Part shown: piece after piece, positions 8,692 through 55,748 of the stretch | How positions within the stretch are numbered: position 1 is the first letter of the stretch | Layout: the number at the start of each line of letters is the position of its first letter | Made by a program: the position numbers and the translations under genes | Notes under the pieces: model-generated | Databases searched by the model: none | Seen by the model: only the letters and a program-made list of their open reading frames with translations | What the model was told of the DNA's origin: nothing | From: Octopus sinensis | Taxonomy: Eukaryota | Assembly: GCF_006345805.1 (NCBI RefSeq) | Contig: NW_021832226.1 | Location: forward strand, 372,001-436,000 | DNA length: 64,000 bases | Reading direction: 5' to 3'

Positions 8692-9135
8692 GTATCAATG
8701 TGGCAAGAATATCTCGTGACAGTCAGCATGAGAATACAAAGTGGTTACAGAGCCTGAAACAACAAATAACAACAGCCGAAACAGTTCACACCCAATTTTA
8801 ATTTATGGATCGGACAATTTATTGGACTAATATTATATAATATATGATTCTTTACAACGAATAAAAGTACAACAAATAAAAGTTGTGTTCAAAATGTTAG
8901 AGAAACCTTGGAACGCCGAAAAAAAGTTGTGTTTATGTAATTTATGAGAAAATTATCTGTTTTTCCGATTCGTGTTTGCATTTACTTGATATTTTTTTTA
9001 ATTAATATTAAAAATAGAACATATTACTTTATTATATAAAAATGAAATAAAATAATATTTATTTGATAACAATAGATATCGCATTCTCAAACTTGTGAGG
9101 TTAGTGAATTCCGATACTCTAATCAAAAAATAGTC

Positions 9136-12100
9136 ATGCAAGTGGCAACCGCTCATAATCCTGTGGACCCCAACATTTTGAATGTAGGACTCGCCTCTTT
9201 CGAAAGATACCGAACTAACAACAAAAGTAACAAACTTTATTAAACCACCAGTCGAACGTGAGAACATCCAAAAGCGTACTTTCACTCGATGGATCAACAG
9301 TCACATATCAAAAGTCAGCGACCTTTGCGTGACCGACCTCTACGTCGACTTGGCCGATGGACGAGTACTCAAAACACTCCTCGAAGTGCTTACAGGAGAA
9401 ACACTGGTATTTCCCGCTACTCAGCACTCATTAATCAATATATCTCTATCCTTACAAGTATTGACAATCAATCGTTGGGTGGCAGCAGCACTCATTAGAA
9501 AATCATTAATTAATTGTCGGGAATTCTTTGGTCATAATTCATTTCTAGTGGGTATTGAATTTAGGCATTCGCGCGTTGATTAGATTGACAATCAATCGAT
9601 TATTATTTGCTACGTTAATTAATTATACTTGCTTTGATATTAATTATGTTTAGCCTGCTCTGAGGAATGATACGATGGGGATATACTGTCTGGAGAATCT
9701 CCACAAGATTATACTCTTCCTTGAGAGTTATCGCGTCCATTTGGAGAATATCCAACCATTGGACATATACACTGGCAACCCTGACTTAATTCTTGGACTA
9801 ATTTGGATTATTATACTCAGTTTTCAGGTTTCTTTCATTTTTCTTATTGTAGGTGTCCGACATTGACCGACAGGATTCCATGCATGTGGCCAGAGAGGTG
9901 GTCTGTCGATCGTCCGCCCCCACCAATAAGTCGGTTGGGGGAAGGGACCGGTCGGAGGCTTTGCTGCGTTGGTGTCAGCTCAAGACAGCCGAGTATCTGA
10001 ACGTGGATATAATGGACTTTACTACATCGTGGAAGGACGGATTGGCATTCAATGCCCTCATCCACAGACATAGGTTAGAATTGGAGGTGAGTGATCTGAC
10101 TAGGCCAGATCTCATATCCTATGACCAACTCAGGAAATACGAGTTTTCTTTTAACCTCAACAACGCATTTTCTGTGGCTCAGCACAGTTTGGGAATTGAA
10201 AGTATCCTCGACCCTTCTGGTTTTCTGTTTTATGTATATTCCAAGATCTGGCAATGGACAGACCCGACAGTCGGTCGATCATAACTTATGTGTCCTCGTT
10301 GTATCAGTATTTTTCCAAACAGAGAGCAGACAGCGTGAGTATCCAGAGACTGTCCAATGTAGAATTGCCATTTTAGTTCTTTCTATAGATATTGAGGGAT
10401 ACGGTTGATATTGAGAAGCAGATCGACAAGTACAATTTTAATGTGGAGGATTTGATGGGGTGGATAGTCCACACGACGGAATCTCTCACTAATGCCTCGT
10501 TGCCCTCCACGGTTGACGAACTGAACGATAAATTGGCTGATTTTTCATTCTACAAATTGAATGTTCGCCCCAAAAGGTGGATTTGATAAATCAGACTCTT
10601 TTAGATTAGAGCAGAAGAATGACCTGGAAGTACTGCTGCTGAACATTCAGAGTAAAATGAGACAGAGGAACATGAGGGACGTTTTTAGTCCCCGAGAAGG
10701 CGAGACGATGGCCGATGTTGATAGGAATTGGGAAATCCTCGAAAGGGTGGAATATTCCTACGAAACCCAAATAAAGACTCAAATGCTCATGTTTTGTGTT
10801 TTATAAACTGTAGATATCGACGACTGGAAATTATGGCTGACAAGTTTGGGCGTTCTGTCAGACAATGCGAGGACTGGGTTGATCTGAAAGCGCAAGAGTT
10901 GGCCTCCTTCGATCAACAATGCGACTATTTGAGCGCCTCAATAGTCATCAAGCGCATGGAGTTACTACAAGCTGAGATTTCCCTGAGGGAACCAATCAAT
11001 CTCACTCTCAAATCCCAAGTGGAATATTTTTCTCAGCAAAACTATAATTTGGATCCTCAAGTCCTTCAAAGGTTCCGATTTGGGTCTGATTTGTGCAGAT
11101 TTGAGGACTATAACTGTAAATGGGGTGAACTGGTTGACAAATATGCTGAAATTAGTCACAAGTTTTCCACATTCAGGATAGTGGAGGCACTCTCTGCGCG
11201 AATAGACAATCTAAACCAAGAAATGGACTGCATTATGGCCAATCTATCTTCGTTTAGTTTCCGGAATGTGAAGCAGATCGACGCCCTCAACGACGACAGT
11301 GCGACATTGGCGAAGGAACTAGACTGGACCGAGTCATGTCTGGCTGTTCTTAGGGAGGACTATGAAAAAGTAGACAACAGTAATCAACTGGCATTATTCT
11401 CTAATAGCAGACGAGACGGACAAATTTGGAGAACAGTTGAATGGATTGGAGTCTCGGATGTCGACAATGAGGGAAATAATGTCGGTTAGGACAGGGAAAC
11501 TGAGGGAACTTCAAGACAACTTTGAGTTGTCACAATCTGCAAATGAGTTCTACTACTGGCTGCAACAGCAACTACTTCTGTCGACGGACAATGGTGATTC
11601 CGTGGAATCAACAATGACATTGATAAACGAGTTGAAGGTGTTGGGAGTGTTTTAATATTTAAAGGAGGTCGGGTTGGGATATGAAAAACGAGTGGAGGAT
11701 TTGAGAATGTTGGCATCTCCATTTGGTACTATCAAAGAGATGGTCGAGAAATGTGGGTTTCCCGCGTTTGATCCAACTCCACTCATGTCCGATTTCGATG
11801 TAAAATTCAACAAGCGGATGAATTTATTAACAGACAGACTGCAAGTGTTTAGAGTAAAACCACTGCTGTCATTTTTGCAGGTTTTGGATCGACTCGACGA
11901 ATTTTCCGACGTGTTGAGGACAATTTATAACATTTATTCTGACGAGGCAACGCCCAATCCAGACATGGCGACTACGGAATTGTTATTGGACCAACTCAAC
12001 GTGAATATGGACAAGTGTTTGGATTATGCCGCAGTCACGGGAATGGCACAACAACTTATATTTGTTAGTGTAGTATTAATATACCACAGGATGGACAAGA

Positions 12101-15100
12101 CGTCGATGGATTGGTTGCAAATAGTGTGGCCGATGTCAACGAATTACATGGCAATGTCGTCTTCCTTTGTGAATCAGAAAAAACACGACTTTTGCGTGTC
12201 TTATCATACAATCAGATAATCAGGAGTCTGAGCTTTATAGGCGATTGGATATCCCTTGAGGTATTATGAGTGAGGTAGTGTGTAGAGCAGGAGACTGGCC
12301 TCCCTCGAAATGGAATCACGAGAATCGGTTAAGACAGCTAAAGTAAATTTGACCGTGATGCTCGATGAGAGTACAAAAATGCAAGAAAAAGTACAACTTT
12401 GTGTGTTCAGTAGTCTAGGTTGATTCGGTTAACAGGAATGCCGAATCCTGGCTGGAAGGGGCAAAGGAGACTGATCCTGTGCAATATGTCAAGGGTCTGT
12501 CCACGCAGGTCAACGACCAGTGGAGGTCTTGGCTGTCGGAATTGGAAAGACGGTGGAGAGAGGTCGGACTGTCCTTCCTTAAGGAGACTATTTCAGTCTC
12601 TCTGAGAGAAGTGGAGGTTTTTAGACCATTGTTACTGGTTTAAAGGAGGAAGTTGATTTTTTCGAGTCTTTTGTTGAGACAGACGTTGAAGACGCGGACT
12701 TGAGTCGACTGATGTACCTGAGGAGACGCCTCCAGAATTTTGACTCAGATATGGACAAGTTAAGGACAAAGGTAGTGGACTGTTCTTATTGCAGCTTGAG
12801 AGTATTGTGAATAAGGTCGGGGATGTGAAGTCGTTGGATGAGGAGTTTTCTGGTCAAGTAATGGAAAATGTGTTTCGGATTACTAGAAGGCTTGATGATA
12901 TCACGGAAAATGTATTTTTGTTGTTTTGTGATTGGAAGGCGAGAAAGTATCAGAATCGAATGGAGGAAGCCAATGAAACCTCACTATTTATATCAAAACT
13001 GGACAAATGGGATGCTTGGCTATCACAATTCGATCTATCAGAGAACGTCCACAGTCAATCACCCATCAGCGATTGGGAAAATCTATTGAAGATATTTGAC
13101 GACTATGACGAATTAATTCAGTCAGAAAAAGACTCTTTCAAACAGACTGTCGAGTTTGGGAGAGATTTGTTGTCGGAAGGGACTGATCTCGACCGTCATA
13201 TTCTCATCTCGGTTTGTAGTCGTGGTGAAATTACATTAGCAAACGAACGCACTCAATGACCGATGGGACTTTGTGGAAGGACAGGTTGCTCAGAGCAAGA
13301 AGGACATTGAAGAATTTATTTTATACAAAGTAAATAATATATTGAGATATTTAAAGTCCTATGAGGAGAGTTTAGAGGAGGCTGGGAGAAAGTTGGAAGA
13401 AGACGAGGCAATGTTGTCCATAGTTATTCCGAAGGTGGCCAGTTAGTTATATTTTAAGGACTTTTATGATGATTTGGTGCCAGTGATTGAAGAATTGGAA
13501 GAATATGTCAACCAAAGGACAGGGGAATCATTCCAAAGTCCATTTATACGATTGGTGGAAGTATCCGAACAGCTCAACGTGCCTGAGATTGGAGACAAAG
13601 TACAGGAAGTACTTAACAGGTGATTTTTCATCCAAACTGTGTTCAGACTGGACGACAATGGTCGGAGGTTGTGTGAGCGTATACAACAACTCAAAAATTT
13701 GGCCAAATTCGTGGAATTTAAAGATTTGTGTGATATTGTATATTGATTTGAGTTATTTGTAGTTTAATTACTCGTCAGTCGCCCTGAGAGATAAGTTGAC
13801 TGGACTAAACAATGTCCCCAGTACTCAGGGGATGGTCAATCGTGAAGAACAGTATTCTCTGCCAGTAGAGAACATGCACCTCCAACACTTTGACATTGAG
13901 GAAATGGTATATTAACTGATATATTGAGAATCCTGCTCAAATGAGTATTGACATGCCTGAATATGAGAGCGAGATTGCTCGGTTGTATGGGGACGTCAAC
14001 GAATTGAAGGACGAGGTAATCACTCTGCTCAAGCCGGGGGACCCTGAAGTCACAGGAAGTGATGACATGGACCTAATCGTCGTCGATTCCAAATTAGGGT
14101 GTGATATTTTGAGTGGAAGACATGCAGCCAATCTTCTCGAGAAATGTGATGTAATATTGTAGTTATAATTGTGCTAAGGAGTTGATGAGGGAAGCTGAGT
14201 CCGAGTCTCCAAACATTTCTGAACGGTGAGTTTAAGGTTAATGAGTGTTAGAGTTTCTGTCGTTGACTCCCACCGAGAGAGGATCATTTCTGTACAGAAG
14301 GCTTTAAGAATGTCAGCCAAATTTAAATATGTTGTGTCATTGGTGGAACGGATGATGTGTGCTGTGGAGGAGACAGTTCCCACCACTTTAGGATACGTTG
14401 AACTGTCCATGGCTGATCTCGGGACACTGGGGGGTAGAGTGGACTCGATTGAGCCAATGGTTACTGAGGTGTTAGAGGAATCGGTGGACATTGTGCAGAC
14501 TGGCTCCGCTCCCGTCGAATTCTCAGAGTGGAATTATAAATTGGAATCACTGTGGAACACACTAAAGACAAGAATCCAAGACCGTTCGAGGGAGTTGAGC
14601 ACGTTGAAGGACTACTATACAGTATTGGCAGAGTGGGAGTGTTTGTAGTGTTGTGTGGAAATGGAAGGACTACTGGAATGGATAGAATTGCAGTCCTCAT
14701 TTCTAATTGGAGAAGTGAATCCGGGGGAGGATATTTATGTGAACGAGTGGGTGTCCTGGAGTCTTGAACTCCGAGAGATGATTGTCCGCAATGGAATCGA
14801 TGAGGTTAATGCGCTCGTCAGTCGAAGCACTGAGTTAGAGGAGGTGGAGTCTTTGTCGGACAGTCAGAGGTGTTCTTGGCCTTTAATTGGTGTAGGAACA
14901 AGTTGAAGGAGGAGAGGGAGGAATTGAATGGTCAGTATGGGAACCTCCTAGAACAGGCCGCAATAAGGAAGAAGGACGTCTTTGTTTTGAGGGCAATGAT
15001 GCAATTTTTCAACTCCTATGTTATGAGTGACTTTTGGTTTGAACAAAAAATATTGTTTGCTCAAAATATGGAGATTTTTGGAAACCTATCAACCATTTCT

Positions 15101-17166
15101 GTATTCTACAACTAATCATTTTTAGCGTCAGAATAAATTAATGGAGGACACGTGTGTGCGGATAAGACAGACGGGGAGAAGTCTTGTAGAGCAGTTCCAG
15201 ACCTTGTTGGATGGGCTTGGAGATAGCCAGTTCATAGTAGACTGTCGACAGAGGCAGAATATAATTTTGAACAAACTGGAAGATCTGGAGGAGATTATTT
15301 CGACAGGATTGGAGTACTGTGGAGAGAAAGTGTCCCTGAGCAGTTACTACAACAAGTCACAAGAAATATGTGACTTTATGGGGGAAATATCCCGATTTGT
15401 CCAGCTCTACCTCGAAAGGTGCAAGAACAGGGAGTCAATGAGTGCCCAGTTGATGTACAAGCGAATATACAGTTATGAAAAGTCATTCTCGACTGTGACC
15501 CAAAGTGTATAGTCCTCTGTTGGAGTTGTAGTTCCAGTCCTTCCAGTTGGAAAAGAACATGTTGGTGGACAAGTACTCGGGAGATGACCGGAATGCCATA
15601 TGCAGTGTGTTTGCAGAGACAGAGACTGCGTGGATGAACCTGAATAGTCTCCTCGAACTGAGCATGTGTCAGATTGACAGTGAAGATCTCCTCATGCAGT
15701 TTTGGAGTCTCACAACATGTTGATGAAGTGGGTGGGATACATGTGTGGCCAACTGTCCACAGAGGAATGCCAGTATTGGTGAGTGTCATCCTGTTTAGGA
15801 CAATGAGTGATATCCAGGCAGTGTGTGAAGAGAATGCCCGAATTTGTTGGGATATTTCCGCATATGACGGGTTGTTCGACAAATATGTCGAGATTGGGCG
15901 TTGTCTGGTCTCACAAAGTCATCCTCGGATGGAGAATGTGTTCGAGGCAGTCCTTCTGCTCACAACCCGGCGGGGCGAGATGATGCAATTATTGACTGAT
16001 AGAGAGTTCATCACCGAATTACGTAATATTTTTGACATATTCCCAGTTCTTGACATAAACATGTTTTGTGGGAATGCGGAAAGAGCCGAAGAATGGTACA
16101 AGTCGAAGGTGGGCTACCTCAAGGACAGTGACCTGGGAGTTGTGTGATGTGATTACATAACATAGAACTCGATGGATCAAGTGGATAGGTTGATAAGACG
16201 ACATAAGCAGATTGTGGAGTCGATGGATAAATATGACTCCATTGTGGCGATTGTGGACAAGTTGACTCAGGTTGAACGACTGGAGGTGTCGGGGGAGGAT
16301 GTGTTTTCTTCACTGAGGGTGTCTAATCTCACCAAAAGAGTCGTGGATGATTATATCGTTGATTTAAAGAGTTCTGAAAAGGATTCCATTCACGTCAGGT
16401 TGGTTTATTTGGTTATTAGTAGTGTGAGTGTCTCCGTTGAGGTTCCAGAACATTCTCAGAGTTTATTGTTGAAATATGTTTTTATAGGGAACGGCAAGTG
16501 TGAAACTGATGTCGAACAAGAAGTTCCAGTTGAAGCCTGTGTCCCCCAAAAACGTGCTTATTAGAATATAAACCTGTTTTAGAACAGGGAGGACTTGCTT
16601 TGAAATTGAAACGAATGACGTCGTTGGTTTCTACAAAGAAGTTAAGTCCCGAGAATACTCCTCCAATCTACGGGGTCTGTGATTTGCCGGCACACTTTGA
16701 GGGGACACTACAGAGGAAGACAGTGTGGGCTAATGCAGATAAGAAGGCATTAAGAAGGTTTGTGTGAATGGAGTAGTCGTAGGAATTGGATGTCACTTTA
16801 TGTGGTCCTCAATGACGGATATCTCTACTTTTACAAGAACGTGAAACTTGCCAAGGAGGTCGAGTGTGGTATAAGTTAAGTCAGAAAACCGTTTGAGACA
16901 TTTCGAGGGGAAGCACCATGGGAGATGAATGGGTCATTCTGTGCATTGGCCGATGACTATGTGAAGCATTCCTTTGTGTTTCGATTAACGAGGACTAATG
17001 GATCGGAATACTTATTCCAGGCGGAGAGTCAGGTATTATGAGGAGTCCAATTTGCAAGGACTTGGCCGAGATGTGGTGTAATAAACTCGTTCAGGCGAGT
17101 GGCCCTTCACTGTCTCATGCTTCCGCTTCTATTGCGAGGACATCTTCCAAAGCAAGAAGGCGTTAA
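9136..17166 (+). CDS. SPTB: Beta-spectrin (CH1-CH2, spectrin repeats, C-terminal PH domain), dozens of tiny introns
   Basis: [101 protein letters not shown] domain [10 protein letters not shown]...[19 protein letters not shown]. Both termini and many internal junctions were checked by hand; the middle was not fully parsed. Confidence 0.93.
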
Positions 17167-17349: not shown

Positions 17350-19300
17350 TGCAGCATAAGAAACAATAAGAGTTATTAGTTTGGTACATTTCCTTTTATC
17401 TTGGGCGACGTCATAAAATTTTCAGTGTTACTGGGAGACAATTTCATGGGCGTCCACAGAAACGAGTTACAAAATAGTCTTCCATAGCTGTGTTTGCCGA
17501 TGCCTCTAAATTCATCCTTAGGGTGTGTCCGAGTAACCTCCACCTGCATGCTGTAATCTCGATAGATTAGTTTGCTTGATATCCTGACATAAACTGTTTT
17601 ACAGCTGAGACTCGAATGGCATTTGAAGGCTAGAGTACGCAAAAGTTTATCTCTATTGAACGAGTCTGATTGAAATTGTCCGTATCAGAAAGTCCTCATG
17701 TTCCAGCATTATAGAGGAGAATAGGTTTTACAAGTGAATTGTATGTGTTTCGTTTAGGTTGCGTAGTGCGGTGTTTTTACATGTTTTATTATGTCGCGTC
17801 CAACACGAGCTACCCATCCCATGGTGGTTACATGTCACCTGTCAATAAATAATAATGCCTGTCATGGTGACTGTCAAATTTAATAATTAAGTAATTGCAT
17901 TGATTTCTAATCAATAATCGTTTCAACAATAAAAATTTATTAAAATAAAGCGTCTACGTTTTTTAACTTGATTCATATTAACTATTTTAGACTTCCCTGA
18001 ACTTGTTTTAATCTGTTAAATAAAATAATAATAAATAGACCTCTAGTCGATTGTTTGACAAAATTTGAACAACTTCAGCAGGTTTGCCATATGGGGATTC
18101 AAATCGGTTTAGCCTTAGGGAAGGATTTGTCCCAAAATCCTTTAGAACTCTAACCTAACAATTATTCACTAAAAATACTCCGCTCCAATTGAAAAATCGT
18201 ATTCGATTGATGAACATTCATTTTTTTATTCATGCGTTTAAAATATGGTGAATTTAAATTAGGTGGAGAAAAATTCAATATAAAATCACTAGCATCAAGT
18301 TGTCTAGCATATGTTATTCAAAATTACCTGAAACATCTAAAATATTTTCTACATCCATATCCTCTGATGATACATGATAAAATCATCCGAACACTCACTT
18401 TTTTTGAAATTAAAAAATTAAAAAAACTTTTATCATCATGAATGACGGTGTTTATACCAGAAACTCCTCTTAGTTTTTTAAATGGTGTTTCATTTATAGA
18501 AGAATGAATGGAGTGCTTTATTGTAAAAAGGAGTGTAAACATTCCTGTTGCAGTTTACGAATTCCAGAATGGCTTTAACGCTAAAAATATTAAATATGCC
18601 CACACGAGTAACGAATGATTAAACCACATTAATTATGACATCTGACAGCCAATGACCTCGTAAAAATGATTTATTGACAGGTGACATGTAGCCAGCATGG
18701 GATGCGTAACCACCATGGACGCGACATATTATATAAACAGGTCTTGTTCGTATCCCAATAGAGATACAAGTTTCTTAATTCTGTTTTCTCCACATTTACA
18801 TTGAGAAATCACCCTGCAAGTTTATTTAGCATCACGTCCAATAGTTTTTTAGAACATCCTGACAGAGAAAATAAAATCCAGGTCATTTGCGTATGCACCA
18901 CGTTGATTTTTTCTTCATAATTTTAATTCTCTCAGTGTATCTTCTAGATATATATGACAACATAGGAGATAACGGATCATCTTAAGGTGTTCCCGATGTT
19001 GTTTCAAATGGCTTAGAGTACTTGTTACGTATCCTGACCGATAGATAGGTTCTGATAAGAGTTCCTGATCATCCGGGCAGAGGATTTGTTAAGGAATTCT
19101 GTTAGGAAATCCATCAATTTCTGACGATTGATCGAGTCAAAAGCTCTTGACAATTCGATTCCGAGAATGTTTGCAGCATCTGTAATGTCCTCGAGTTTAT
19201 CCGGAAAATATTTCAGAGAATGTTATCATACAATATAACCAAATGATTTTGATGTCCTGAAGAACTGCATCATTCAATGCGCATTTTGATTCATCAGAAA
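17350..19300 (-). mobile_element. Decayed RTE-like LINE, split by the Ginger-type element at 17792-18726
   Basis: RT motifs GIELSRAFDSINRQKL and YANDLDF (18.9-19.2 kb) continue across the insertion to RWRLLGHTLRMN (17.5 kb). Confidence 0.7.
17792..18726 (-). mobile_element. Non-autonomous Ginger2/Tdd-like DNA transposon
   Basis: TGT...ACA ends, imperfect TIRs of about 58 bp (tgtcgcgtcca...catgtcacctgtcaataaat), 5-bp TSD TATTA. Internal remnant VRVLKDFGTNPSLRLNRFESPYG resembles the integrase C-terminus of the 50013 element. Confidence 0.85.
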
Positions 19301-19665
19301 ATTCTTGCAAATCGGCAAAACATGAAATTTTATTTTATCAACGAAAACTCTCTAAAAATTGATTTTTCGTTTTAATTCAATTACTTTTACATTTAAAATA
19401 CAAACAGTTTAATATTTTTCCTGAAGCGATAATGTAAATTTATTAAGTTCGCGTAAATGGAAACTAATATTCAATTTTCTTCCACTAACAAAAGAAAAAT
19501 GGAAAGACTACTATTACAATTTGGAGCTATTTGCTGTAGCTTTACTCTTAAGATTATCCTAATTGTGACTGACTCAATGTATGCCTGAATATTAAAATTA
19601 AATTTCCAAAAATAAATGTTAATATTAGTGTTAATTAACCCTAAAGAAGAAATAGTTTCTGGTAA

Positions 19666-20347
19666 TTATCCTATTACGAGACATAGACCTAATTTTAATA
19701 AAGTATAGGTAGGTACCTCTGAGAATATTCATGATTTGGTTTTGCTTGAAAGTATTTTTCTTTCTTGCCATAATTACGTAAAGAATTAGAGCAATAATAC
19801 ATACGCTTAGAACTATGAGAACAGCGACAACTATGTGGGTATAATCGATTTTTAATTCATTATCTTTAACAAATTAATATTTAGGGTAAACTCTTTTTAT
19901 AAGCTATTTTGGTTTCTAAAACAATTGAATGAAATTTAGTTACCATTTGGACTTTTGCGTGTTGTTTTTTCTATATAAAAATATTAACAAATGAAAATTA
20001 ATACGATTAAGATTCTTTTTTAGAGAAATTTTTTCTAAAGTGTATTAATTGTTCAGTGTATTACTTATTACAGGCTTCCTATTAGTGGTATTATCTATAC
20101 TATATTGATTGTTAAATTACCAGAAGTGGTTATAGTTGTACTTGTATCTAGAATGTATTAATATTTTAAGTTACCTAAAGTTGCTTTAGTTGTAGTAGTA
20201 TCTAAAATGTATTGAATACTGTTTCACCTGGAGTTGTGATTGTATTTGAATTTCTGAGTAGATAAAGTTGTTTTGTAATGGGGGTTCTTAACATACAATA
20301 AAGAACTAAGTATTACTCAATGTGTAGATCTTTCATAATTTTTGGGA
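19666..20347 (-). CDS. Micro-exon gene for a Thr/Lys-rich single-pass membrane protein (5' end unresolved)
   Basis: Six consecutive 24-30 nt phase-1 exons plus a 147-nt phase-1 exon, separated by 26-34 nt GT-AG introns, splice into one frame: ...NTITTP-DTTTTKATL-DTSTTITTS-DNTTNRKPVI-KKISLKKNLN-QKTTRKSPN-ETKIAYKK-NNELKIDYTH-IVVAVLIVLSVCIIALILYVIMA-RKK. Confidence 0.75.
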
Positions 20348-21199
20348 CTAATGTATTATGATTATTAAATTACGGTAGGGTCGTGATCTGAGAATGGCAC
20401 AGTATTGTGGATGTAATTATGTCCTTCTGAGGTAAAAATTTCTATTATTAAAAAATACGAGTTGATATATACAAGTTGATATAAAAGACATATAAACTAA
20501 AACATCACTGTTCTGTCGGGAGCCCCAGATTTAAGGTGGCTAGGTCTACAATAACGAATTCATTACTGCTCCAGAGATCCGAGGGAATTTATATTCCTTA
20601 TTCAGAGAATCTCGCTGGCTGTTTTACGCGAGAATTGTCTTTCAATCCTGCAAGCCAGTTCATAATAGCTAGATTTTTTTTGACAATTTCTCATAAAATT
20701 AATTAAAAAATTAAAAAAAAATTAACACAATTATCTTTTGGTTAATATACATTTTTCATGCTAAATAATAATAGTTCCAAAAAATGAAATAGTTTCAACT
20801 TAAATAATAATTATTTCAAGCTAAATGGAAAAATGTAATAGAATAGAATTGTTTTCGGGGAGATCATTAACGGGAAGATAAAAACAAAACACCAAAGTGT
20901 CTCTTTTCATGCTAACCTCAGTTATTATTACTTAACATAACTTTTTTTAATGACCATCATGATTATGGGTATAGAGGATTCTTGCGAGTCTTCTAGCCTT
21001 CAATCAAGTTGTATTCCATAAGCCAGTTTCAATGCAAAACATCTTGTTTTTTCCAACTGTTCAATAAGGTAGTCACTTTCCTTTGCCCTAATTTCATGAT
21101 GCAAAAACTGTTCAAAATAAAAAAATTTAAGATTTTCTTTTTTTTAAGCAGTGGTACGTAAAAGCAAAGAACGAAAATTAGAATGGTCTATTAAAAATC

Positions 21200-22100
21200 A
21201 CATATTTTTGATCTTTATAAACGGATAAAGATTGGCGACGCTTAGCTATTCAGCTTAATGTTTCTCAACCTACGACCTATCGTTGAATAAAAATAGGAAA
21301 CAACCTGATAGTCGTGGAGGAGATTATTGTGCCAAAGTTATAGAAATTCATAAAATGGCAATTTGCAGTTATATGGAGAAAATCCTCTAATAACATTAAG
21401 TGGTTAGGGAACAAACTCTCCGAATTTCATCAATTGGCTAAATCAAGAGTACAGTTTTTAGACATTTTGATTTAATGACCTATTTACTCAAAAGAGTAAG
21501 GTTTGAGCCTGAGAAAGCCAATAATATTGAAAATAAAGAAAGAAAAGTTTTTTTAAAATTTATTAACTTATCAAAGTAAAAGTTTACCAATTTTTCTATG
21601 AATGAGAGTAATCTCAATATCTAGATCTCCCAATCTGAGGAGAGATCAATTAGTAGAATTAGATGCACCGTTACTGCGGCAGGTTCAAAATATGCTAATA
21701 TTTACATGATTGGGTGTATTCGTTCCCTTGGACTAATACATTATGACGCTAAACGAGGAGCATTTTGTTAAGAAAATGCAATTGAACAAATGAGATAACG
21801 TTAAAGAAATGCTTACAATATCTACAGAAGACCGGTTGTAGTTGTCTTGGACGCCCCCTGCCATTCATGTATTAAAGAAATTTTGTTAGAAGAGGAATTT
21901 AAGATTTATAAATTTTTAAGATTGGCTCCTCACAATCAAATGGTTAATTCTGTTGAACATATTTGGTCTGTAGTAAAAGCAGATGTTAAAAAACTTGCTG
22001 AAAAAAAAGCTGATTTATTAAGTGATGAACTTCGTGGAACTTTATCAATAAGAAAATGTCGTCTTCAATTTTTAACAAAATTTATTAAAAAGGCAAAAAT
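21200..22100 (+). mobile_element. Decayed IS630/Tc1-like transposase
   Basis: DDE remnants: NESNLNI, GSKYANIYMIGCI, VLDAPCHS, LAPHNQMVNSVEHIWSVVKADVKK. Confidence 0.65.
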
Positions 22101-22139
22101 TTAATTCTTCTTGATTTGCCCATTAATAAAAACAATATA

Positions 22140-23358
22140 CAGTGAAACCTCTCGAATCCGCTGCTTCTCGAATCCGCCGCTTCTCGAATCCGCTTATTTT
22201 AATCAAAAATTTGAAATTTCCTATGAATGATTCTTGAATCCGCTTGTTTCTCGAATCCGCTCCTCAAGTATTATGAAAAATAATTTTTTAATTAACATTT
22301 TAAAATTTTCATTACACGTTAAATTGTATTTTTGTGATGCGTCGTTGTGTTAGACTTTCTATCAACGAAAAAATTTCTATACTACGTTATATTTCTGACA
22401 ACCCATTTGTTTCTGCACCTCAAATTTCCAGGATTTTTTCTTCACGATAAAAAAATTTTAACGAGAACTATAAACGACCTTAAATCAATATCGGACCTTT
22501 TGAATAGGACTGATATCAAAAAATTAAACATAATGAGAATTCCAAAACTCAAATTTAATGAAATTGATGTAGCGATGATAACATGGATTGACTAATGGAA
22601 TCTAGTGAAAGCTCTTAAATTTGGAAAAATGATCCAGAATTTAAAGCAAGTCGTGGGTGGCTAGAAAAGTTTAAATTACGAAATGGTATCAAGTTAAGAA
22701 AATTTCATGGAGACAGTGGATCAGTAAATCATTATGAAAAATCTATTGCTGATTTTAATGAAACAATCAGTTTAAAAATTGAACAATATGGATTGGACAA
22801 TGTTATAATTCAGATGAAACTGGTGTTTGTTACAAGGCGATTTCTTCTAAAAGTGTGTGCACTAAATCAAGGCCTGGAATAAAGTTGTCGAAAGATCGAT
22901 TTTCTTTACTATTATGCACAAATTGTTCTGGTTCCGATAAAAAAGGCCTATAATGATAGGAAGATTCAAAAGTGCAAGATGTTTTTAAAATTTCAACATT
23001 GAAAATATTTTACCTACACCAAATCAATAAGACATCGATGAACCGTGAAATTTTAACAAGTGGCTCAGTTATTTTGATTGTGAACTTGCGAAGAAAAAAG
23101 AAAAAATCTACTTGAAATAGATAAATGATCTCGAAAATATTATGCGAATTGAAGAAATGTTATAAAATTTTTGATATTTTGAATATAAATAATTTTACGT
23201 ATTCAGTCATTTGTATATAAAAAGAAATATTTAATCTATATTGTAAGCTCATGTTTCAACTATAAAATATTATTTAATTGCCTCTCGAATCCGCCGATTT
23301 CTCGAATCCGCCGATTTTTGGTCGGTCCCAAAATCGGCGGATTAGAGAGGTTTTACTG
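22140..23358 (+). mobile_element. pogo/Tigger-like DNA transposon (defective)
   Basis: TA-flanked TIRs cagtgaaacctctcgaatccgc / gcggattagagaggttttactg, with repeated subterminal tctcgaatccgc. CENP-B HTH FKASRGWLEKFKLRNGI and NSDETG motif. Confidence 0.9.
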
Positions 23359-24230
23359 TAGTTGCATAGTAAATTTTGATATTTCGAAAAAAAGGTTTTT
23401 TTTGCACCTAGTGTAAAGGAAAAATACCGGCGGAATTAGCTTTAGAAAACATGAAATTTTAATAAAAGATTTTTTACAGTTTTACGAATTTATTAACGTG
23501 TTTCCATTTAGCTTAAAACTGCTATCATTTAACATGGAAAATTGTATAGATTATACCTACTTCACATATATTAAGACTTTTTGAATGAACGATTTACATC
23601 TTCCTAACTTCCCAACCGAATCAAATTCCAGGTACATATATCTATGAGAAAACATCAAATTAAATCAAGGCCTGTTTTGCAATCTAATGATAACGAAATA
23701 ATATCCTTGACGTAAAAAATCTTATGGTGAAATACTAAAACATAAATTTATAATAAATTTCGCGGAAACCAGGTTGCGAGCCACTGGAATAGACAATTAA
23801 AAATCCAGACCAAATATAAAACAAAAACGAGAAACTTTGAATAAAATTATTGATTGCAAAGATAACTCAAATTACCATCCTGAAAATGGATTTTTTGATC
23901 TGAATAATATTTGTCACAGTCCAGGGCTGCGAGACGCCAGAGCTGCGAGGTTTTGAAAATATTAATAATTTAAAAAAAAATTACATTCTGAAGTTCTTTT
24001 GTTGATCTCTTCAATAAATATCTGAATTATTAATTTTTTCTTAATTTTTCAGAGATTGTGATTTCATGAAAACCAACATATCACCAAAATCATTGATTTA
24101 ACGTAGCGTTTTTTGAGTCTATTAAAAAATTCACGGAAAATGGTTAACCAAACTAATTTTTGCGACGAAATTTATTAAAATATTAATTAAAATTTATAAT
24201 ATTAAACTTATAAGACTAAACTAACCGACA

Positions 24231-39060: not shown

Positions 39061-39568
39061 TTTCATTTTTTGAAACAGTGAATCCTAATTCAACTTAAGA
39101 ACCATAACTAGAATGAAAAACCACGCTAATCAAATCAGACTAATTTTAATGTTTTTGTTTATACTTGATTACCGACCAAGGGAGACGAGCTGGCTCTTTC
39201 AGCGAATCTCGGCCGACGTGCTCCGCGAAAAATGCCATTCAATACGCAGTGCGGCATCGTTTTACTGACGCTTAGGCTTTAAAATACCCTTTCAGCCACT
39301 TATCCTAGTTAGCATCCAAGTTTGTCCTTTAATATTTATTCCCATTACACAATTAGTTTTAACTTTAACATATTTTGATTTTTTAAAATTCCTGGGCTGA
39401 GAACCGCTGATCTAAATAATTTTAACTTAAATACTGAGGATATCTTTATTTAAAATATTATAAGTTTTTAAAAGAATTACATTTGTGTGACTTTGCAGCC
39501 TAAATACTCAAAAATATCAAAAAACGAGTAAAAATTTTTGAAAAAGAGAGTTTTAATAAAAAAATAAT

Positions 39569-42755: not shown

Positions 42756-45700
42756 TGTCACCGGTTTTATAGCCCACTGGGTTGGATAACCCACCTACTG
42801 CCATATTTTATAATAATATTTTTCATATATTTAATTTCATTGAAAAAAATAATTTTCTTAATTATTTTAATAATTTATTGTTCTTTTTTAAATATTTTAG
42901 CGTGAAAACTAACTTTTTATTAATAAAGTTTAAAAACTGTGAAAATAAGTAGGGTTGTTCAATTCTTTTGAAATTAACGACAAACCAACTTAATGAAATA
43001 AAAAATTTTAACCAACTACTATATACCAGGGGTCACCAAACTTTTTGCACTCGCGGGCCGGATTGACCCCAACACAATGAACGCGGGCCGGAGCACGTGC
43101 ATAGGATTATAATTTTACTAGAAATTCATAAGTGTGTTTTTTACAATAAAAACTAATTTAAACAAAAATAAAGTAAACAAAATTTTAATGAGAGCTATGG
43201 AACTGTGATCTTTTTTTGATAAGTTCATCAATATTTGGTTTTAAATTGCTGCATCCTATCATGAGAATTGATTTTAAGTGTCCGTCAGTCAATCTTGCAC
43301 GATGGGCAGACTTAACATATTTCATCCTCGAAAACGTTTGCTCACATTGGTAAGTTGTGCCAAATATAGCAATCATCTTTATCGCAAAATTCTTTAGTCT
43401 CGGAAACTCATCATCCTTGAGATATTCGTAGAACTCAGCGAGTTTGGTCCGTCTGTGACAATCTTTGAGCTGTTCATTTGATTGTAAGTCAATAACTTCT
43501 AATTGTAATTCATGTTGAACATTTTCAACATTACAAGAAAATGGATTTTCGAACAAAATTATATCGCTTTCAATTTTGTCAAGTTCAGAAAACTTATGTA
43601 AAAATGATGTTTTAATTCTTTGATAATTCCAATTTGGAAAGTAATGTCGATCTCATTACAGTTTGCCTCACAAAAACTTTTAAAACAAGAAAAGTGTGAA
43701 AACTGACGTACTCCAAGTTGTGACTCGAATAACATCAATTTTTGTCGAAATGCTTTAATTATCCTGTAGAAATCACAAATTAAGTTTTCCTTTCCTTGTA
43801 ATTTCAGATTTAGCTCATTCATGTGAGTTGTAACATCAACCAAAAATGATAATTTTGATAGCCAAGCAAGATCTGATAATTCGGGATAATAGTTATTTTT
43901 ACTGGTTAGAAAAATATCAATCTCACTTCGGAGTTTATAAAATCTATTTAATACATTACCACAGCTAAGCCATCTAACTGCAGTGTAATATGGTAAGTCA
44001 AAATATTCAGATCCAAAATCGTCAAGTAAAACTTTAAACTGACGGTGATTAAGTGAGCTCCCTCGAACAAAGTTTATTATGCGAATAACTGGATTCAACA
44101 CACATGAAATATTAAGAGCCTTCGCACATAGTGCGTGCTGATGAAGGATGCAATGAATGAACAAAGTGTTTGAAATATGTAATTCCTCCAATTTATTAGT
44201 TATTTGCCCAACTAGACCCTTTTTAGAACCAGCCATATTCTTTGCCCCGTCAATCGTAACACAACTCAGTTTCTCCCATTCAAGGTTATAGTCACTTATA
44301 GTTTGTTCCAATTCATCAAAAATATCTTTTCCAGTGGTTGTTCCATGAATAGAACAAACAGATGCCAGTTCTTCAGTTATGGAAATATTCTCATCAACTC
44401 CACGAATAAAAATAAGAAGTTGCGATGTTCCCGAAATGTCAACTGACTCATCCAATGCAAGAGAATACCACAACATATTACTTGTCTTTTCACAAATTTG
44501 TAAATATATTTTTTTTCCAAGCTCTTCAGTTCTCCGTGATACAGAACTCGCCGACAAACTTATTCCATCAAATAAGGAAGAATTTAGTGGGCACAAACAA
44601 TTAACTGCTTCAATAATGCAATTTTTGATATACATCCCATCACTAAAGGGTTTCCCGTGTTGTGAAATAATTTTCGTTATCTCGTATCCAGCTCTTGTTA
44701 CATTTTCATTATTTTCAAAATTTTTTTTTATAAGGCCTTGTTGAATTTGTAAAGTGCGTTTCAGTGATTCAACTTTATCCTCACGTAGCTTTCCAGTGTA
44801 CTTGGAATATATCGGAGCATGATTCGTTTCATAATGACGTCGAATGTTATACTCCTTCATAACAGAGAGATGTTCGTGGCATATTAAACAATAAGCTTTC
44901 TGCTTTAATTCATCTTTCGCAAAAAAATACTTCAATTCCCATAATTTATTGAATACACGGCATTCGCGGTCAACCTTTCTTTTCATATTAGACATAGCAA
45001 CAAAGAAAAATTTAACGTTAATGCTGATAAGTTTTTTTTCGAATTAAATCTTGCAAAATAGTTTTATTTAAGTTAATTATTAAGGTATTAATTGAATATC
45101 TCGAAATAGTGCGCGGGCCGGATAAAATGTTGTCGCGGGCCGGATCCGGCCCGCGGGCCGTAGTTTGGTGACGTCTGCTATATACGATAAAGAGAAAAGG
45201 AGAAAGCTCAGGACGCTTAAAAATCGTTTTTGCTTCAAAGTTAAAAAAGATTTTCTTCTCAATCCGACCTCCGTTTATTTTGCAAACAGACAATGGGAAA
45301 GAGTTCAAGAATAAATGCATGGAATTAATGTGCTCCGAATTAAACATCACTCATATATGTGGACGACCTAGAGCACCCTGGGTTCAGGGGCAAGTGGAGA
45401 GGTTTCTTATAGTCAATTTATTTGTAGGTTTAATCAATCAATTAAAAGATGGATTAGCTCTACAAGTGCATACAACGGAATGCTAGGGAAATTCAAGGAT
45501 TTTTATCAAGAAATTGTATACAAATATAACATTACACAACATGAAACTACCAAATGGGCGCCCTTCAAAATTTTTATGGGGGATAAAAGAGATTCGGAAA
45601 GAACAGAAGATCAAATAAATGCATTGTTAATGTTCGACGGAACAAATGCAGAACTAAGTAATGAGTCAAATTCGAATTATTTCGAAAATGAAAGATAATG

Positions 45701-47610: not shown

Positions 47611-48803
47611 ATGGATTTGGTTACTGCTCTAAAAAATCGAATAAAATCGAACAAAAATGATGATTTCTATGGAAAATTAAACCATTATTATGCAGTTACT
47701 GTTCTTGTACTTATTTCCGTCATAATTTCAACTAAGAGTTTAGTTGGAAATCCTATCAACTGCTGGTGTCCAGCCCATTTTACTGGTTTAATTCGAGAGA
47801 ATGCTAATTTTTAGGAGACATGGTTAAATATGCTGAAGAAACATGTTATTCTGGAGAAAAATTTTTTGCTTTGTCGAATAATGGAAATAACCAAAAAATG
47901 GTACATATTCCAACTGCTGGAATATTTCACTGGATTCCTCTAGCTTCTTTGTTTCTTGCATTAATATACAGACTACCATATATATTATGGTCAACAATTT
48001 GCAGAATGAGTGATCTTAATATTGAACAGTTAATCGGCATGACTAGAAAATGTGAAGATATTGATACTGAACAAAACAAAAACAAAAACCTAGACAATAT
48101 ATCGTTGTATTTCAATAAATACAGATCCATGAAAAAACTATTAACAATCGAAAATAGTTCTTCCAATTCATTTATACAATTTTTTTCAAATTTCATACAA
48201 AAATTACAATCTCTGTCGACCATGTATATCTTGATAAAATTTCTCTACGTTGCAATTTCGATATCACAAATCACTTTAATGGAAACTTTTATTATCAGTA
48301 AAACCAATTTGAGCTTCAGTCAAGGAATGTTTAATGATATTCTTGGGGTTATTAAAAGCATGGAATCTGTATATTTTCCAAGAAATGTACTCTGTCAATT
48401 CAAAATAAGAGAAATCGGACATTGGAATGAACCATATCTTCAATCAGTAGAATGTATTCTCCCAATAAACAAATATGCACACGCACTATTTGGGTTTTAT
48501 TGGTTCTTTTTGTTAACAGTGGGAATTTTTAATGTCATGGGACTTTTAAAATGGATCTGGTATATATACTTTCGATTTGTAAATGAAGGATACATACTTT
48601 TTATGATAACATCGAAAGATTCTACAGCAAAGAAAAAATACTTTGTTAGACATTATTTGGGAAACGAAGGAGTTTTTGCAATTCGTTTAATGGTCGATAA
48701 CTCAAGCGATTTTGTGGTCAAAAAAGTTGTAAATAAACTTTATGCACAATTCAAATTGCAAAATCCTAGCACTGACGATCTTTCGGACGTTGCCCTCTTA
48801 TAA
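47611..48803 (+). CDS. inx: Innexin, single 29-nt intron (47786-47814)
   Basis: DDFYGKLNHYY...VGNPINCWCPAHFTG^DMVKYAEETC, FPRNVLCQFKIR, ECILPIN; four hydrophobic segments. Confidence 0.93.
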
Positions 48804-50368: not shown

Positions 50369-50508
50369 CTAACCTAACTTCGACCTTATCCCTAACCCCA
50401 ACATTATCCCTAACCCTAACCTTATCTCTAACCCTATCCTTATTCCTATCCCTAACCCCAACCTTATCCCTAACCTTATCCCCAACCCCAACCTATCCTT
50501 AACCCTTA
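50369..50508 (-). repeat. Degenerate telomere-like array inside the Ginger element
   Basis: Repeated ccctaa / ccccaa / ccttat units, e.g. accttatccctaacccca. Confidence 0.85.
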
Positions 50509-50544
50509 TTTTAACACAGGCCTTATTTTTTATAAACAAAAACA

Positions 50545-51757
50545 TTAATCAATTTTATAAAGTCTCACAATATTTGTTCCTTTTACGACAAATCCTTCTT
50601 CATCTTCAATATCAAAATTCATATTTTCTCTCGCAATAACTTTATATTTTTTCGTATCAATTTGATCATATAATGGATAATTTCTATTCTGTGGATTAGC
50701 ATCAATATCCTGCCGTAATAGAACATTATCCCCCACCTAAATCCGCATTATAACACGTGATAAACAAACTTAATGTCGTTTTCGTCGAATTTCCATTTCC
50801 GTTTGTTTTTCATTTTTTCTCCTGCTTTCGTTAGATTCTCGTATGTTGATAACAAATTTTTTGCAATATTTTCCTCATGAGTTACTTCATTTTCAACAAA
50901 TTGAATTTCAGCATCAGCATCTTCTCCATTAAACGCGCAGAGAGCTTCCATTTCTTCACCACTTGGTGCATAATTGCCTCTTACTCCCATAAAGATATTG
51001 AAAGGAATATGCTTTGTTGTGGCATGTCGTGAACGATTATAGTCGTAAACAATTCCTTTAATAATATCTTTATAGACGCCAAAAATTCTATTAGAACTAC
51101 TTGTAGATGAAATCCACCTTTTGATAGATTGATTAAATCTAAAAAGTTTGATAATTTATTTGCTGTAGGTTACCTTTCAACCTGGCCTTGAATCCAAGGT
51201 GCTCTGGGTCTTCCACAAATATGTTTTATTTTCATTTTTTCGCAAATTGCATTTACATAGGAATTCATAAATTCCCTCCCGTTATCGGTTTGTAGAATGA
51301 CTGGGGGGCCAATTATGTAAAAAATATTTTGTAATAACGAAGAAATCTCAGCACCAGGTTTATTTTTGGCTAGCTCCACAACTCCAAATTTAGAAAAAGA
51401 ATCAATAAGTACAAGTACCTATAAATTACAATTCTGAAAGTATACCCAAGAATTTGAATCATTCACTTCCGCATATCGGCGCAGATCAACAAGATTAGAA
51501 TTATGCTCGGACTATTTTTAGATGACAACCAATACTTCAATCATTAGTAATTTTAGTTCTGCGTCTTCAATACAAAAAAATCGTAGATTTAGGCCATTTC
51601 TTCGTATATAAGCTTTTCCATCAGCAAAAGAAAAGGTTTCTGCATGTTGTTTGACTTTATATCTCTCCTTCTTATCAAAAACTTCATCCAAATTCTGGGA
51701 TTCTTTGTATTCTTTGATTTTTGACAAAGTATCTCTAGTCAAAACCAGTAGACCCAT
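50545..51757 (-). CDS. Ginger2-type integrase, 4 introns (24, 27, 35, 29 nt), with an in-frame deletion of the HHCC finger
   Basis: Spliced frame is open: MGLLVLTR...MIE^SEHNSNLVDLRRY...SW^VLVLIDSFSKF...LQTDNGREF...QGQVER^FNQSIK...DIKF^VGDNVLL...YKID*. Confidence 0.8.
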
Positions 51758-52299
51758 TTTTCACGTGACAGTTTAATTTTATAAAAGTAATATTCTTTTT
51801 TAAAAATAATTAATAAATATGTGTTTATTACTGTTAATAAACTATTTTCAATATTTTTTATTTGAAAATACGCTTGCGGTCCCAGCAGATGCCGGGTCCC
51901 AGCAAAAACCGGTGACATTTTATATGCCAATCAAATTTTTTAGTGAACTCTTCCCATATTTTTGTGCCATATAAATTAGTTAAATTTGTTCGTTTTTTAC
52001 CAAAATTGATTTGAATTTTGAAAAATACACAAATATATATCACGCAAATAATAATTATTATTAATAAGCACACCGCAAAATAACGTTGGTAAAGTTATCT
52101 CGCTTGTGCCACCCTCTCCTGGATGCGAGGAACAGAGGGACTTGGAAGCGATTAACAAAACGCAAATAATCACCAAAATAATTAACTTCATTAAGAATCG
52201 AATTGAACAATTATATCATGAATTTATATTTTATCATTTTCAAACTATCCTATCACTAAATGCACGTTTAAAAATATAAAATACACTTCTAAAAGAGTT

Positions 52300-52760
52300 A
52301 TAAACAGTCTGACCTCACTTTGGTCCAGACCCTGTAAACACCTTCGTTTCTTGACCAATTTTCTAAAATGAACGTTTTTCAATGGTAAAACAGATATTTT
52401 ACAACTCTGACAGAATCATTTTAAAAATCTGTCCTTTCCAATCCGGGGTCTGACCTTATTGAAATTTATATTGATTTTCAATTTGACAGTGAGTTTCTTG
52501 ATAAACATTACCATTCAACATGAGAGGCCAAAGTTTTGCAGGGTTTGGATTAAGAATTCGTGGTGTACTGAGCCAAATGCTTTCCTCACATCAATCCACA
52601 TACAAGATAGCTTACTCGCATTTTGCTGGTTTTTGCTATACTCATCTTTTATTATTTTCCGTATCTCCTTGCATAGGGGTCCATGGACAGCAGTGAAGCT
52701 CTTTATAAAAAAAAGTTGTAAACTCCATCGCAGCCGCTTGCTTTCCAATTTAAGCAAAAC
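52300..52760 (-). mobile_element. R4/Dong-like RT fragment
   Basis: MWIDVRKAFGSVHHEFL. Confidence 0.65.
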
Positions 52761-52809
52761 TTTTCAAAAATGCCTTCCGAGTGGGCTACAGGTGGTACCG
52801 CCCAGAAAA

Positions 52810-54850: not shown

Positions 54851-54948
54851 GAAAGTTTATCGAGCGTCGACCTTATTCAGAAAATTCACTACTTAATTAG
54901 CAAAGTTTATTTATTTAATAAAGGGTTAAAATGTCAATTAGTACTATT

Positions 54949-55748
54949 TCATTGTGTTTCAACAATATTTTTATCTTTAAATTTCCACATGTAACATGTG
55001 AAAAAAATTGCCAACAACTATTAGTAAAAATTAAAGCACTTACAATTAGAAAACCCATTGTTCCAGTTCCTATATAAATGTAGAGGGAAAGCTCATTTAT
55101 ATAATTTAATAAAACTGACGGACAAGTCTAAAATAAAATAAATACTAAAACCTTTGATATATCGGAATTATGGCTAGGACAACAAGTCTCTGGCAAAATT
55201 CGTATATCTTGTGAAGTCCCGTTATTATAACCACAACAGTTAAGCTAACGAATAAATATAAGATTTAATCACTTTTTTATGAAGATTGTCAATAAATTTA
55301 ACGTTTTTATCGTAATCATCAATTAAAGCCTTGAAGAATAAACGAATTCCAATTTTTATTACAGGCTGAAAGCTCAACAACCCCGAAATAATTGCTAAGC
55401 AAAGAATCAGGACGGTTAAAAGACCGACAATAAACTAAAATTAGATAAAATCTATTAGAATACTAATATTTTAATGCATTTATTTTTTCTGGATATAGAT
55501 ATGAATCCACAAATTGAAATTAAAAAGATGAAAATTCCAGATAAGCAACCTATCCAAATAGGAAATGAATATAGAATGAGATTATTTTCAAAAGTGTTTA
55601 AAATTTTAAACTCTATTCCATATAGAGATGAAATTGCAATAAATCCAAATGAAAGTAACTATGAATAAAATAAGTTAGAAACATTTAAAACCAGCAATAA
55701 TATAGATAAAAAAATTATAACTCCCTTCTTGAATGTCGCTGTTTCCAT
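54949..55748 (-). CDS. Tetraspanin, 5 introns (33, 29, 28, 24, 26 nt)
   Basis: Spliced model has four TM segments and a large extracellular loop with LNCCGY, PETCC and a further Cys. Confidence 0.9.

Follow-up and report, generated by a model that had tools for sequence, protein, structure and literature searches.

The Micro-Exon Locus

The DNA analysed here is a stretch of 64,000 nucleotides, called the window below, which corresponds with 100% identity to about positions 372,001-436,000 of contig VCDQ01004506.1 (674,425 bp) in the Octopus sinensis assembly GCA_006345805.1. On the minus strand of the window, a chain of very short exons was identified which reads into a hydrophobic segment and is treated here as a candidate gene for a small membrane protein. 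The chain consists of micro-exons of 27, 27, 30, 30, 27, and 24 nt, followed by an exon of 147 nt and by a last exon of 23 nt. Every exon has AG before it, and every exon but the last has GT after it. The introns in between are 27, 26, 30, 34, 28, 28, and 28 nt long, and an extra intron of 26 nt (20227-20202) is present upstream; all eight are in phase 1. The pieces of the locus are listed here, where the second haplotype refers to another contig of the same assembly that is described below.

20228-20292, minus strand: possible first coding exon, from ATG 20292-20290, coding for MLRTPITKQLYLLRNSNTITTP; ends in phase 1 at a GT donor; in the window haplotype only
20202-20227, minus strand: intron 0, 26 nt, GT..TAG, 3' end aatacattttag
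20175-20201, minus strand: micro-exon 1, 27 nt, phase 1-1, (D)TTTTKATL
20148-20174, minus strand: intron 1, 27 nt, GTAA..TAG; 26 nt in the second haplotype
20121-20147, minus strand: micro-exon 2, 27 nt, (D)TSTTITTS; tandem copy of the unit formed by exon 1 and intron 1
20095-20120, minus strand: intron 2, 26 nt, GTAA..TAG
20065-20094, minus strand: micro-exon 3, 30 nt, (D)NTTNRKPVI, with an N-x-T sequon; identical in the second haplotype
20035-20064, minus strand: intron 3, 30 nt, GTAA..TAG
20005-20034, minus strand: micro-exon 4, 30 nt, (K)KISLKKNLN; identical in the second haplotype
19971-20004, minus strand: intron 4, 34 nt, GTAT..TAG
19944-19970, minus strand: micro-exon 5, 27 nt, (Q)KTTRKSPN; the most variable piece between the haplotypes
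19916-19943, minus strand: intron 5, 28 nt, GTAA..TAG
19892-19915, minus strand: micro-exon 6, 24 nt, (E)TKIAYKK
19864-19891, minus strand: intron 6, 28 nt, GTTT..AAG
19717-19863, minus strand: membrane-helix exon, 147 nt, phase 1-1, coding for NNELKIDYTH, the helix IVVAVLIVLSVCIIALILYVIMA (19834-19766), and then RKKNTFKQNQIMNILR
19689-19716, minus strand: intron 7, 28 nt, GTAC..TAG; read-through is also open, and use of the intron is uncertain
19666-19688, minus strand: last exon, 23 nt, (G)LCLVIG, with the stop TAA at 19668-19666
20112-20218, no strand assigned: 54-nt tandem repeat, 2.0 copies with 81% match (Tandem Repeats Finder), which is the duplicated exon plus intron cassette

A preliminary description of this DNA, made by reading the letters, had given the coordinates of the exons and introns, their 1-1 phase, and their GT-AG borders, and all of these proved to be exact when the minus strand was read and the spliced sequence was translated. 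The six micro-exons contribute 165 of the 335 spliced coding nucleotides; six of the eight modelled exons have a length of 24-30 nt, and all six are multiples of three. In the spliced 335 nt, a single frame is open over 111 codons, and the remaining two frames hold 9-11 stops. For the unspliced region, the list of open reading frames (ORFs) contains only four that start with ATG, with a length of 30-46 amino acids. Upstream of the membrane-helix exon, no GT other than that of intron 6 lies at the distance of a normal intron. A shorter model, in which translation starts at ATG 19946 and reads through intron 5 to give a membrane protein of 74 amino acids, was rejected, since this ATG is missing from the second haplotype.

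The exons and introns were duplicated together. When seven exon plus intron units were aligned, units 0-3 were identified as diverged copies of each other, with the possible first exon (20228-20292) being the degenerate unit 0, and units 4-5 were found to have a common intron core. Mean column identity is 50% over all seven units; the diverged copies nonetheless keep the AG, the GT, and an exon length divisible by three, while their intron lengths, unlike those of the exons, differ by numbers that are not multiples of three. Tandem duplication had already been proposed on the basis of a common intron 3' end, aataca(t/c)t(t/c)tag, which is present in three introns, and of D-T-x-T-T repeats, which are found as DTTTT in exon 1 and DTSTT in exon 2. 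The period of 54 nt with its 81% match and the relation among units 0-3 bear this out.

The Predicted Product

The spliced translation reads (D)TTTTKATL-DTSTTITTS-DNTTNRKPVI-KKISLKKNLN-QKTTRKSPN-ETKIAYKK-NNELKIDYTH-IVVAVLIVLSVCIIALILYVIMA-RKKNTFKQNQIMNILR-GLCLVIG, followed by a stop. It consists of a Thr/Lys-rich stretch, a membrane helix of 23 residues, and the residues RKK directly after the helix, an order that had been predicted and was confirmed by translation and hydropathy. The ORF of the helix exon reaches a hydropathy peak of 3.30, which is rank 2 among the 1149 ORFs of the window. This ORF is closed by a stop three codons ahead of its acceptor and offers no ATG in frame ahead of the helix; therefore, if it is coding, it has to be spliced to upstream exons. 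A Pfam search with the helix ORF of 80 amino acids gave sub-threshold matches to membrane-anchor families only, for example to DUF3377 (E=2e-4, below the cutoff).

The candidate has a GC content of 0.29 and a third-position GC content (GC3) of 0.22, with codons ending in A or T, compared to a GC of 0.30 and a GC3 of 0.27 for the innexin gene of the window. Since the composition of the two is matched, the AT-richness of the candidate is no argument against coding.

The Source Genome and Its Introns

Pfam matches in the window to innexin (47820-48803), to ERO1, and to fragments of hAT/ZBED-type proteins and of reverse transcriptase (RT) identify it as part of an animal genome. An acetyl-CoA synthetase (ACS) gene on the minus strand (6147-4659) contains six GT-AG introns of 25, 30, 27, 25, 34, and 26 nt. 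With these removed, a protein of 412 residues is obtained which aligns from end to end to PDB 8sf3_A (E=4e-153), unbroken across the junctions. Ultra-short introns are thus a property of this genome that is proven by homology.

Among animals, introns below 30 nt have been reported only for Dicyema japonicum and for myxobolid myxozoans (PMC13644364). D. japonicum was collected from the renal sacs of O. sinensis, and its genome has a GC content of 36.7% and contains 49% repeats (PMC6736024). Because the window belongs to a contig of the O. sinensis assembly and has introns of 25-34 nt that are proven by homology, its most likely source is a dicyemid parasite whose DNA was co-assembled with that of its octopus host. 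A mesozoan-like parasite had been suggested as the source, and a dicyemid fits this suggestion. The presence of a 674-kb contig of this probable origin inside the O. sinensis reference, with products labelled as those of the octopus, matters to users of the assembly with or without the candidate gene. The proteins of the contig, like XP_029655023.1, are very divergent and are labelled as octopus products.

For a comparison of the candidate introns with real ones, a set of 22 introns of 23-34 nt was used, six of them being the homology-proven introns of the ACS gene and the rest picked by eye for joining long ORFs. A 3' end with TAG is present in 7/8 candidates, in 73% of the comparison introns, and in 27% of random AT-rich GT..AG pairs; when the duplicated units are counted once, TAG is found in 4/5 candidates (P~0.02). 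A start with GTA is present in 6/8 candidates, in 36% of the comparison introns, and in 24% of the random pairs. With 26-34 nt, the candidates lie within the length class of 25-34 nt proven in the window. A branch-point-like motif, T[TC]AA, was identified in 8/8 candidates, yet it occurs in 23% of real introns and in 23% of pseudo-introns, and was rejected as a splicing rule. Since it is not enriched in real introns, it reflects the common ancestry of the units.

Expectation by Chance

Both strands of the window were scanned for chains of symmetric, stop-free exons of 21-36 nt with a length divisible by three, separated by GT-AG introns of 24-36 nt. The chain of six at the locus is the sole run longer than four in the 64 kb on either strand, and it exists in phase 1 only; in the same scan, no chain in another phase or on the other strand was found at the locus. 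As a null model, 1576 sequences of 64 kb were simulated with a second-order Markov model trained on 18-24 kb. The longest chain had five exons in 4.3% of these sequences, six in 0.25%, and seven in 0.06%, so that at least six were reached in 5/1576 (~0.3%). When exons of 21-150 nt were permitted, the real chain had eight exons, with P(>=8)=1.1%. The pattern of the chain is real and exceeds what is expected by chance, with the caveat that the common ancestry of four units reduces their independence in this null.

These numbers bear on a non-coding explanation, in which the locus would be a decayed, AT-rich minisatellite flanked by remnants of transposons and lying beside a chance hydrophobic ORF, with AG and GT spaced by multiples of three through accident and with nothing spliced or translated. 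This explanation is considered somewhat improbable. The null expectation is not vanishing, with 0.3% per window for six exons, 4.6% for five, and 1.1% for the relaxed chain, and the four units of common ancestry are not independent events. Splice signals in the dicyemid genome are weak, which makes GT..AG pairs poorly informative (PMC13644364). What a minisatellite leaves to coincidence is the chain itself, its right phase into the ORF of rank 2 in hydrophobicity, the RKK residues, and the TAG ends, which jointly are far rarer than singly. The locus offers no second chain in any other phase or strand, and the diverged copies retain AG, GT, and exons divisible by three while intron lengths vary off multiples of three. 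If the gene should turn out not to be expressed, the locus would be a caution that, with weak splice signals and introns of about 27 nt, in-frame chains can thread non-coding DNA, with a chance frequency of about 0.3-1% for each 64 kb.

The Second Haplotype

A second contig of the assembly, VCDQ01006870.1 (35,631 bp), aligns to positions 2513-33496 of the window and includes the locus. It represents an alternative haplotype or strain, whose identity to the window is 99.5% in the gene region of 2.5-17.4 kb and 93-97% in the region of 17.4-23.9 kb. The exons of the ACS gene have zero differences between the two. For positions 18727-20565, the identity is 95.5%, which is about ten times the divergence of the neighbouring genes. 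The end of the second contig (28476-35631) repeats window positions 8827-15985 and looks misassembled, and the NCBI model LOC115232212 spans 23 kb across this contig.

The second haplotype retains each of the sixteen splice dinucleotides, its micro-exons are free of indels and stops, and its spliced frame stays open from exon 1 up to a stop codon. The candidate introns differ by five substitutions and two 1-nt indels. In the micro-exons, eight substitutions were identified, seven nonsynonymous and one synonymous, five of the eight being located in exon 5; micro-exon 1 has two nonsynonymous differences and no indel. As a result, 6/64 ectodomain residues differ between the haplotypes. In the helix exon, two substitutions were found where 6.5 are expected, both are synonymous, and the helix is identical. 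A comparison of nonsynonymous and synonymous changes had been proposed for different isolates and was carried out on these two haplotypes: the helix exon gave 0 nonsynonymous and 2 synonymous changes, and the micro-exons gave 7 and 1. The pattern is compatible with a lack of constraint as well as with an ectodomain that evolves quickly while its anchor is conserved, and the numbers are too small to separate the two. The gene body shows no significant depletion of substitutions or of indels when it is compared to aligned flanks of 3.5 kb (P~0.1 for indels).

The indels of the second haplotype are mostly +1 extensions of homopolymers, which are also present inside the long ORFs of a spectrin-like gene (window positions 15709, 15788, and 16403). 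This suggests that the homopolymer insertions are long-read errors that were left uncorrected in parasite contigs of low coverage. Because they also break long neighbouring ORFs, the indel evidence is unreliable and was used neither for nor against the gene.

The 5' End, Homology, and Surroundings

Several results weigh against a gene at this locus. Neither a signal peptide nor a joinable hydrophobic exon starting with Met was found within 1.7 kb upstream, and the only ATGs in frame, at 20292 and 20335, do not stay so in the second haplotype. In the latter, indels upstream of 20228 that total +4 nt break the frame from ATG 20292, which leaves zero paths from an ATG. Just after the helix, a +1 insertion in the second haplotype changes the whole tail; the new tail is still open and basic, and the insertion may be an assembly error. 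The substitution rate of the micro-exons, 4.8% compared to 3.8% in the flanks, together with the ratio of seven nonsynonymous to one synonymous change, does not indicate purifying selection. No match at E<=1 was obtained for the spliced model of 133 amino acids among 5.8e9 protein clusters, and none for the helix ORF of 80 amino acids among 1.84e9 representatives searched with HMMER. Neither collection yielded a homologue or a transcript-derived protein. These homology negatives are weak, since the innexin of the window likewise matches nothing and the collections appear to be without the transcriptome of this organism. In positions 833-21655 of the window, NCBI annotates one gene only, and none at the candidate. 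The locus is a gap of 1.2 kb, rich in AT, among transposon fragments. In addition, six exons below 31 nt between introns below 35 nt would make high steric demands on spliceosomes, and we know of no precedent for such an arrangement.

Further searches were negative as well. An exact scan of metagenome contigs of the Joint Genome Institute (JGI) for the junction of exon 6 and the helix exon and for the helix exon itself, used as a proxy for transcripts, gave 0 matches, a negative that is likewise weak, no paralogues were detected within the window by tblastn or blastn, and the Rfam and tRNA scans returned nothing. The elements that surround the locus are the following.

18918-19334: RT fragment that flanks the locus
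20566-20720: 3' piece of a long interspersed nuclear element (LINE), 155 nt, coding for the C-terminus of a LINE-type ORF; present in the window, absent from the second haplotype
20793-23539: pogo/Tigger-like DNA transposon of 2.7 kb, with inverted ends of 44 nt that are 75% complementary

The LINE piece resembles window positions 58125-58211 and 39176-39259, and it represents a polymorphic, 5'-truncated LINE insertion, given the ORF end that it encodes and its absence from the second haplotype. The pogo-like element contains decayed pieces of HTH_Tnp_Tc5 and of a DDE domain on the plus strand, and the second haplotype is without positions 22118-23414. In the interior of the element, at 22146-22265 and 23279-23350, clusters of a motif of 16-17 nt (TCTCGAATCCGC...) are present in direct and inverted orientation, which may be transposase-binding subterminal repeats. 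The possibility that the locus itself is part of a transposon was rejected: no other copies are present in the window, the locus is syntenic in both haplotypes, and the RT and LINE fragments stop short of it.

For the minisatellite explanation, the neutral appearance of the substitution rate and of the nonsynonymous to synonymous ratio, the lack of a conserved start or signal peptide, the shifted tail of the second haplotype, and the absence of homologues and of annotation in a transposon-rich setting are all as expected. The deficit of substitutions in the helix exon (two vs 6.5 expected), with both of them synonymous, argues against it.

The same observations can be read as the remains of a dying or dead gene. 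Here, the locus would be a 3' remnant, from which the 5' exons with the start and the signal peptide were lost or split off by transposon insertions, and its decay would be recent. This is judged to be unlikely. It would explain why a gene-like architecture is without a 5' end in both haplotypes and why the polymorphic LINE piece and the pogo-like element lie immediately upstream, and it agrees with the neutral substitution pattern, with the frameshift in one haplotype, and with an identity between haplotypes of 95.5% for the region vs 99.5% for the neighbouring genes. On the other hand, after a haplotype divergence of about 3-4%, neither copy has acquired a stop or an indel in any micro-exon. 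The frameshifts of the second haplotype may be assembly errors, given the +1 homopolymer changes inside neighbouring ORFs, and the missing signal peptide is not decisive given type III insertion. In this topology, a protein whose N-terminal ectodomain is short and unfolded can insert into the membrane without a signal peptide.

Interpretation as a Possible Dicyemid Membrane Protein Gene

The reading of the locus as a gene is favoured because the junctions are exact, the introns belong to a proven class with TAG ends, the chain is rare, the helix is in phase, and the splice sites are kept. The gene is plausible but unproven, and to a lineage-specific dicyemid gene, either intact or recently inactivated, we assign about an even chance. 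Such a gene would code for a small protein of the mucin-like type, about 110-135 residues long, that crosses the membrane once. The predicted ectodomain of 64-86 residues would be hydrophilic and rich in Thr, Lys, and Asn, could bear O- and N-glycans, and would be followed after the helix by a short basic cytoplasmic tail. Since the C-terminal flank of the helix is the more positive one, the N-terminus is predicted to be located outside the cell. Such a topology would require either a signal peptide that has not been discovered yet or type III insertion.

The ectodomain is proposed to have grown by tandem duplication of cassettes of about 54 nt, each comprising an exon of 24-30 nt and an intron of 26-34 nt. 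Because each cassette is in phase 1-1 and divisible by three, gain, loss, or divergence of cassettes in the DNA is safe for the frame. Splicing would be constitutive and would proceed by intron definition, like that of the other ultra-short introns of this genome, and variation between haplotypes would arise through fast substitution rather than by combinatorial exon skipping.

Variation by exon skipping had been proposed for this locus. As had been stated, any subset of the six micro-exons can be removed in frame: 64/64 skipping isoforms stay open, and since none of the exons has T as its last base, no stop can arise at a junction formed by skipping. Nevertheless, a protein that is varied through skipping in the manner of schistosome micro-exon genes (MEGs) is unlikely. 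Very short introns are recognised by intron definition, with skipping being rare and intron retention being the usual error. Retention of intron 1 meets a stop (G GTA ACT TAA). Skipping of a single exon would require an intron of about 80 nt, which is outside the narrow length class of the genome, and skipping is therefore disfavoured. An independently evolved and expressed dicyemid micro-exon gene, which includes different exon subsets in each transcript and thereby forms a combinatorially variable, glycosylated coat at the interface of parasite and octopus, is accordingly held to be very improbable. Expressed in this way, the gene would pack sixteen splice sites into about 500 nt.

Should transcription and splicing of the locus follow the model, no animal would be known to pack spliceosomal introns and exons more densely. 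The alternation of exons of 24-30 nt with introns of 26-34 nt would then test the spacing of spliceosomes and the recognition of micro-exons under intron definition. A micro-exon architecture would also have arisen a second time, independently, in a surface protein of a parasite, and the very poorly known interface of dicyemids and cephalopods would gain a first candidate molecule.

Comparison to Known Systems

Schistosome MEGs contain 10-20 exons of 6-81 bp separated by introns of 0.1-5 kb, code for secreted proteins with a conserved N-terminal signal peptide, and are restricted to the Schistosomatidae (bioRxiv 10.1101/2023.06.21.545858). The candidate has in common with them very short internal exons divisible by three, introns of the same phase, the in-frame removability of exons, and the origin of exons by duplication, as well as a small, fast-evolving, parasite-specific product directed outside the cell, which for the candidate is a prediction. 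However, its introns are 26-34 nt long instead of 0.1-5 kb, and it has a C-terminal membrane helix and no detected signal peptide, in contrast to the secreted MEG products. The candidate has no sequence similarity to MEG proteins, it is located in a dicyemid rather than a flatworm genome, and exon skipping is not mechanistically favoured. The locus is MEG-like in architecture but is no member of the MEG family: micro-exons and their symmetry are found, and the introns, the signal peptide, and homology differ.

With regard to the predicted product, the closest likeness is to mucin-like single-pass glycoproteins. These include proteins of the glycophorin, CD43, endomucin, and podoplanin type, and among them glycophorin C is a type III protein without a cleaved signal peptide. 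Like the candidate, these proteins combine a short ectodomain of low complexity, rich in Ser and Thr, with a single helix that is followed by a basic stop-transfer cluster and a short tail. The candidate differs in being without homology to these proteins and in being unusually rich in Lys, with about 27% Thr/Ser, and its glycosylation is a prediction only. Furthermore, the known genes have a conventional exon structure.

Symmetric phase 1-1 modules are also known from metazoan extracellular proteins, where folded domains of 100-300 nt were spread by exon shuffling and duplication. In both cases, tandem duplication lengthens the extracellular region while the frame is kept. A candidate exon, in contrast, codes for 8-10 disordered residues, and its intron was co-duplicated within the unit of about 54 nt.

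Compared to ordinary dicyemid genes, the candidate has similar introns of about 25-34 nt, GT..(T)AG ends, a weak consensus, and an AT-rich composition like that of the innexin gene of the window. The mean exon length in D. japonicum is 198 nt (PMC6736024, PMC13644364), from which six successive exons of 24-30 nt deviate strongly.

Other Features of the Window

The innexin gene (47820-48803, plus strand) is a single-exon ORF of 327 amino acids with a GC content of 0.30 and a Pfam E-value of 2.5e-34. It is so divergent that a word-based protein search returned no relative. Hydrophobic helices are encoded at 54918-55658 (minus strand) by three exons, all of them AT-rich and about 200 nt long, one of which has a weak match to tetraspanin (E=0.007); this is probably an unannotated gene for a multi-pass membrane protein.

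An intact ORF of 478 amino acids (43559-44995, minus strand) contains a Spin-doc/ZBED zinc finger and DUF4371 and codes for a hAT-type transposase, which is possibly still active. At 17811-17853 and 18666-18708, inverted repeats of 43 nt were identified which are 91% complementary and 812 nt apart, resembling a miniature inverted-repeat transposable element (MITE). A C-rich region at 50-52 kb was considered as a second mucin gene and rejected. Instead, a tandem repeat of 18/30 nt at 50383-50509 and 50750-52763, with a GC skew of -0.27, codes for PNPNL-like peptides and adjoins the remnant of a long terminal repeat (LTR) retrotransposon with an rve integrase (51173-51418) and an RT (52518-52763).

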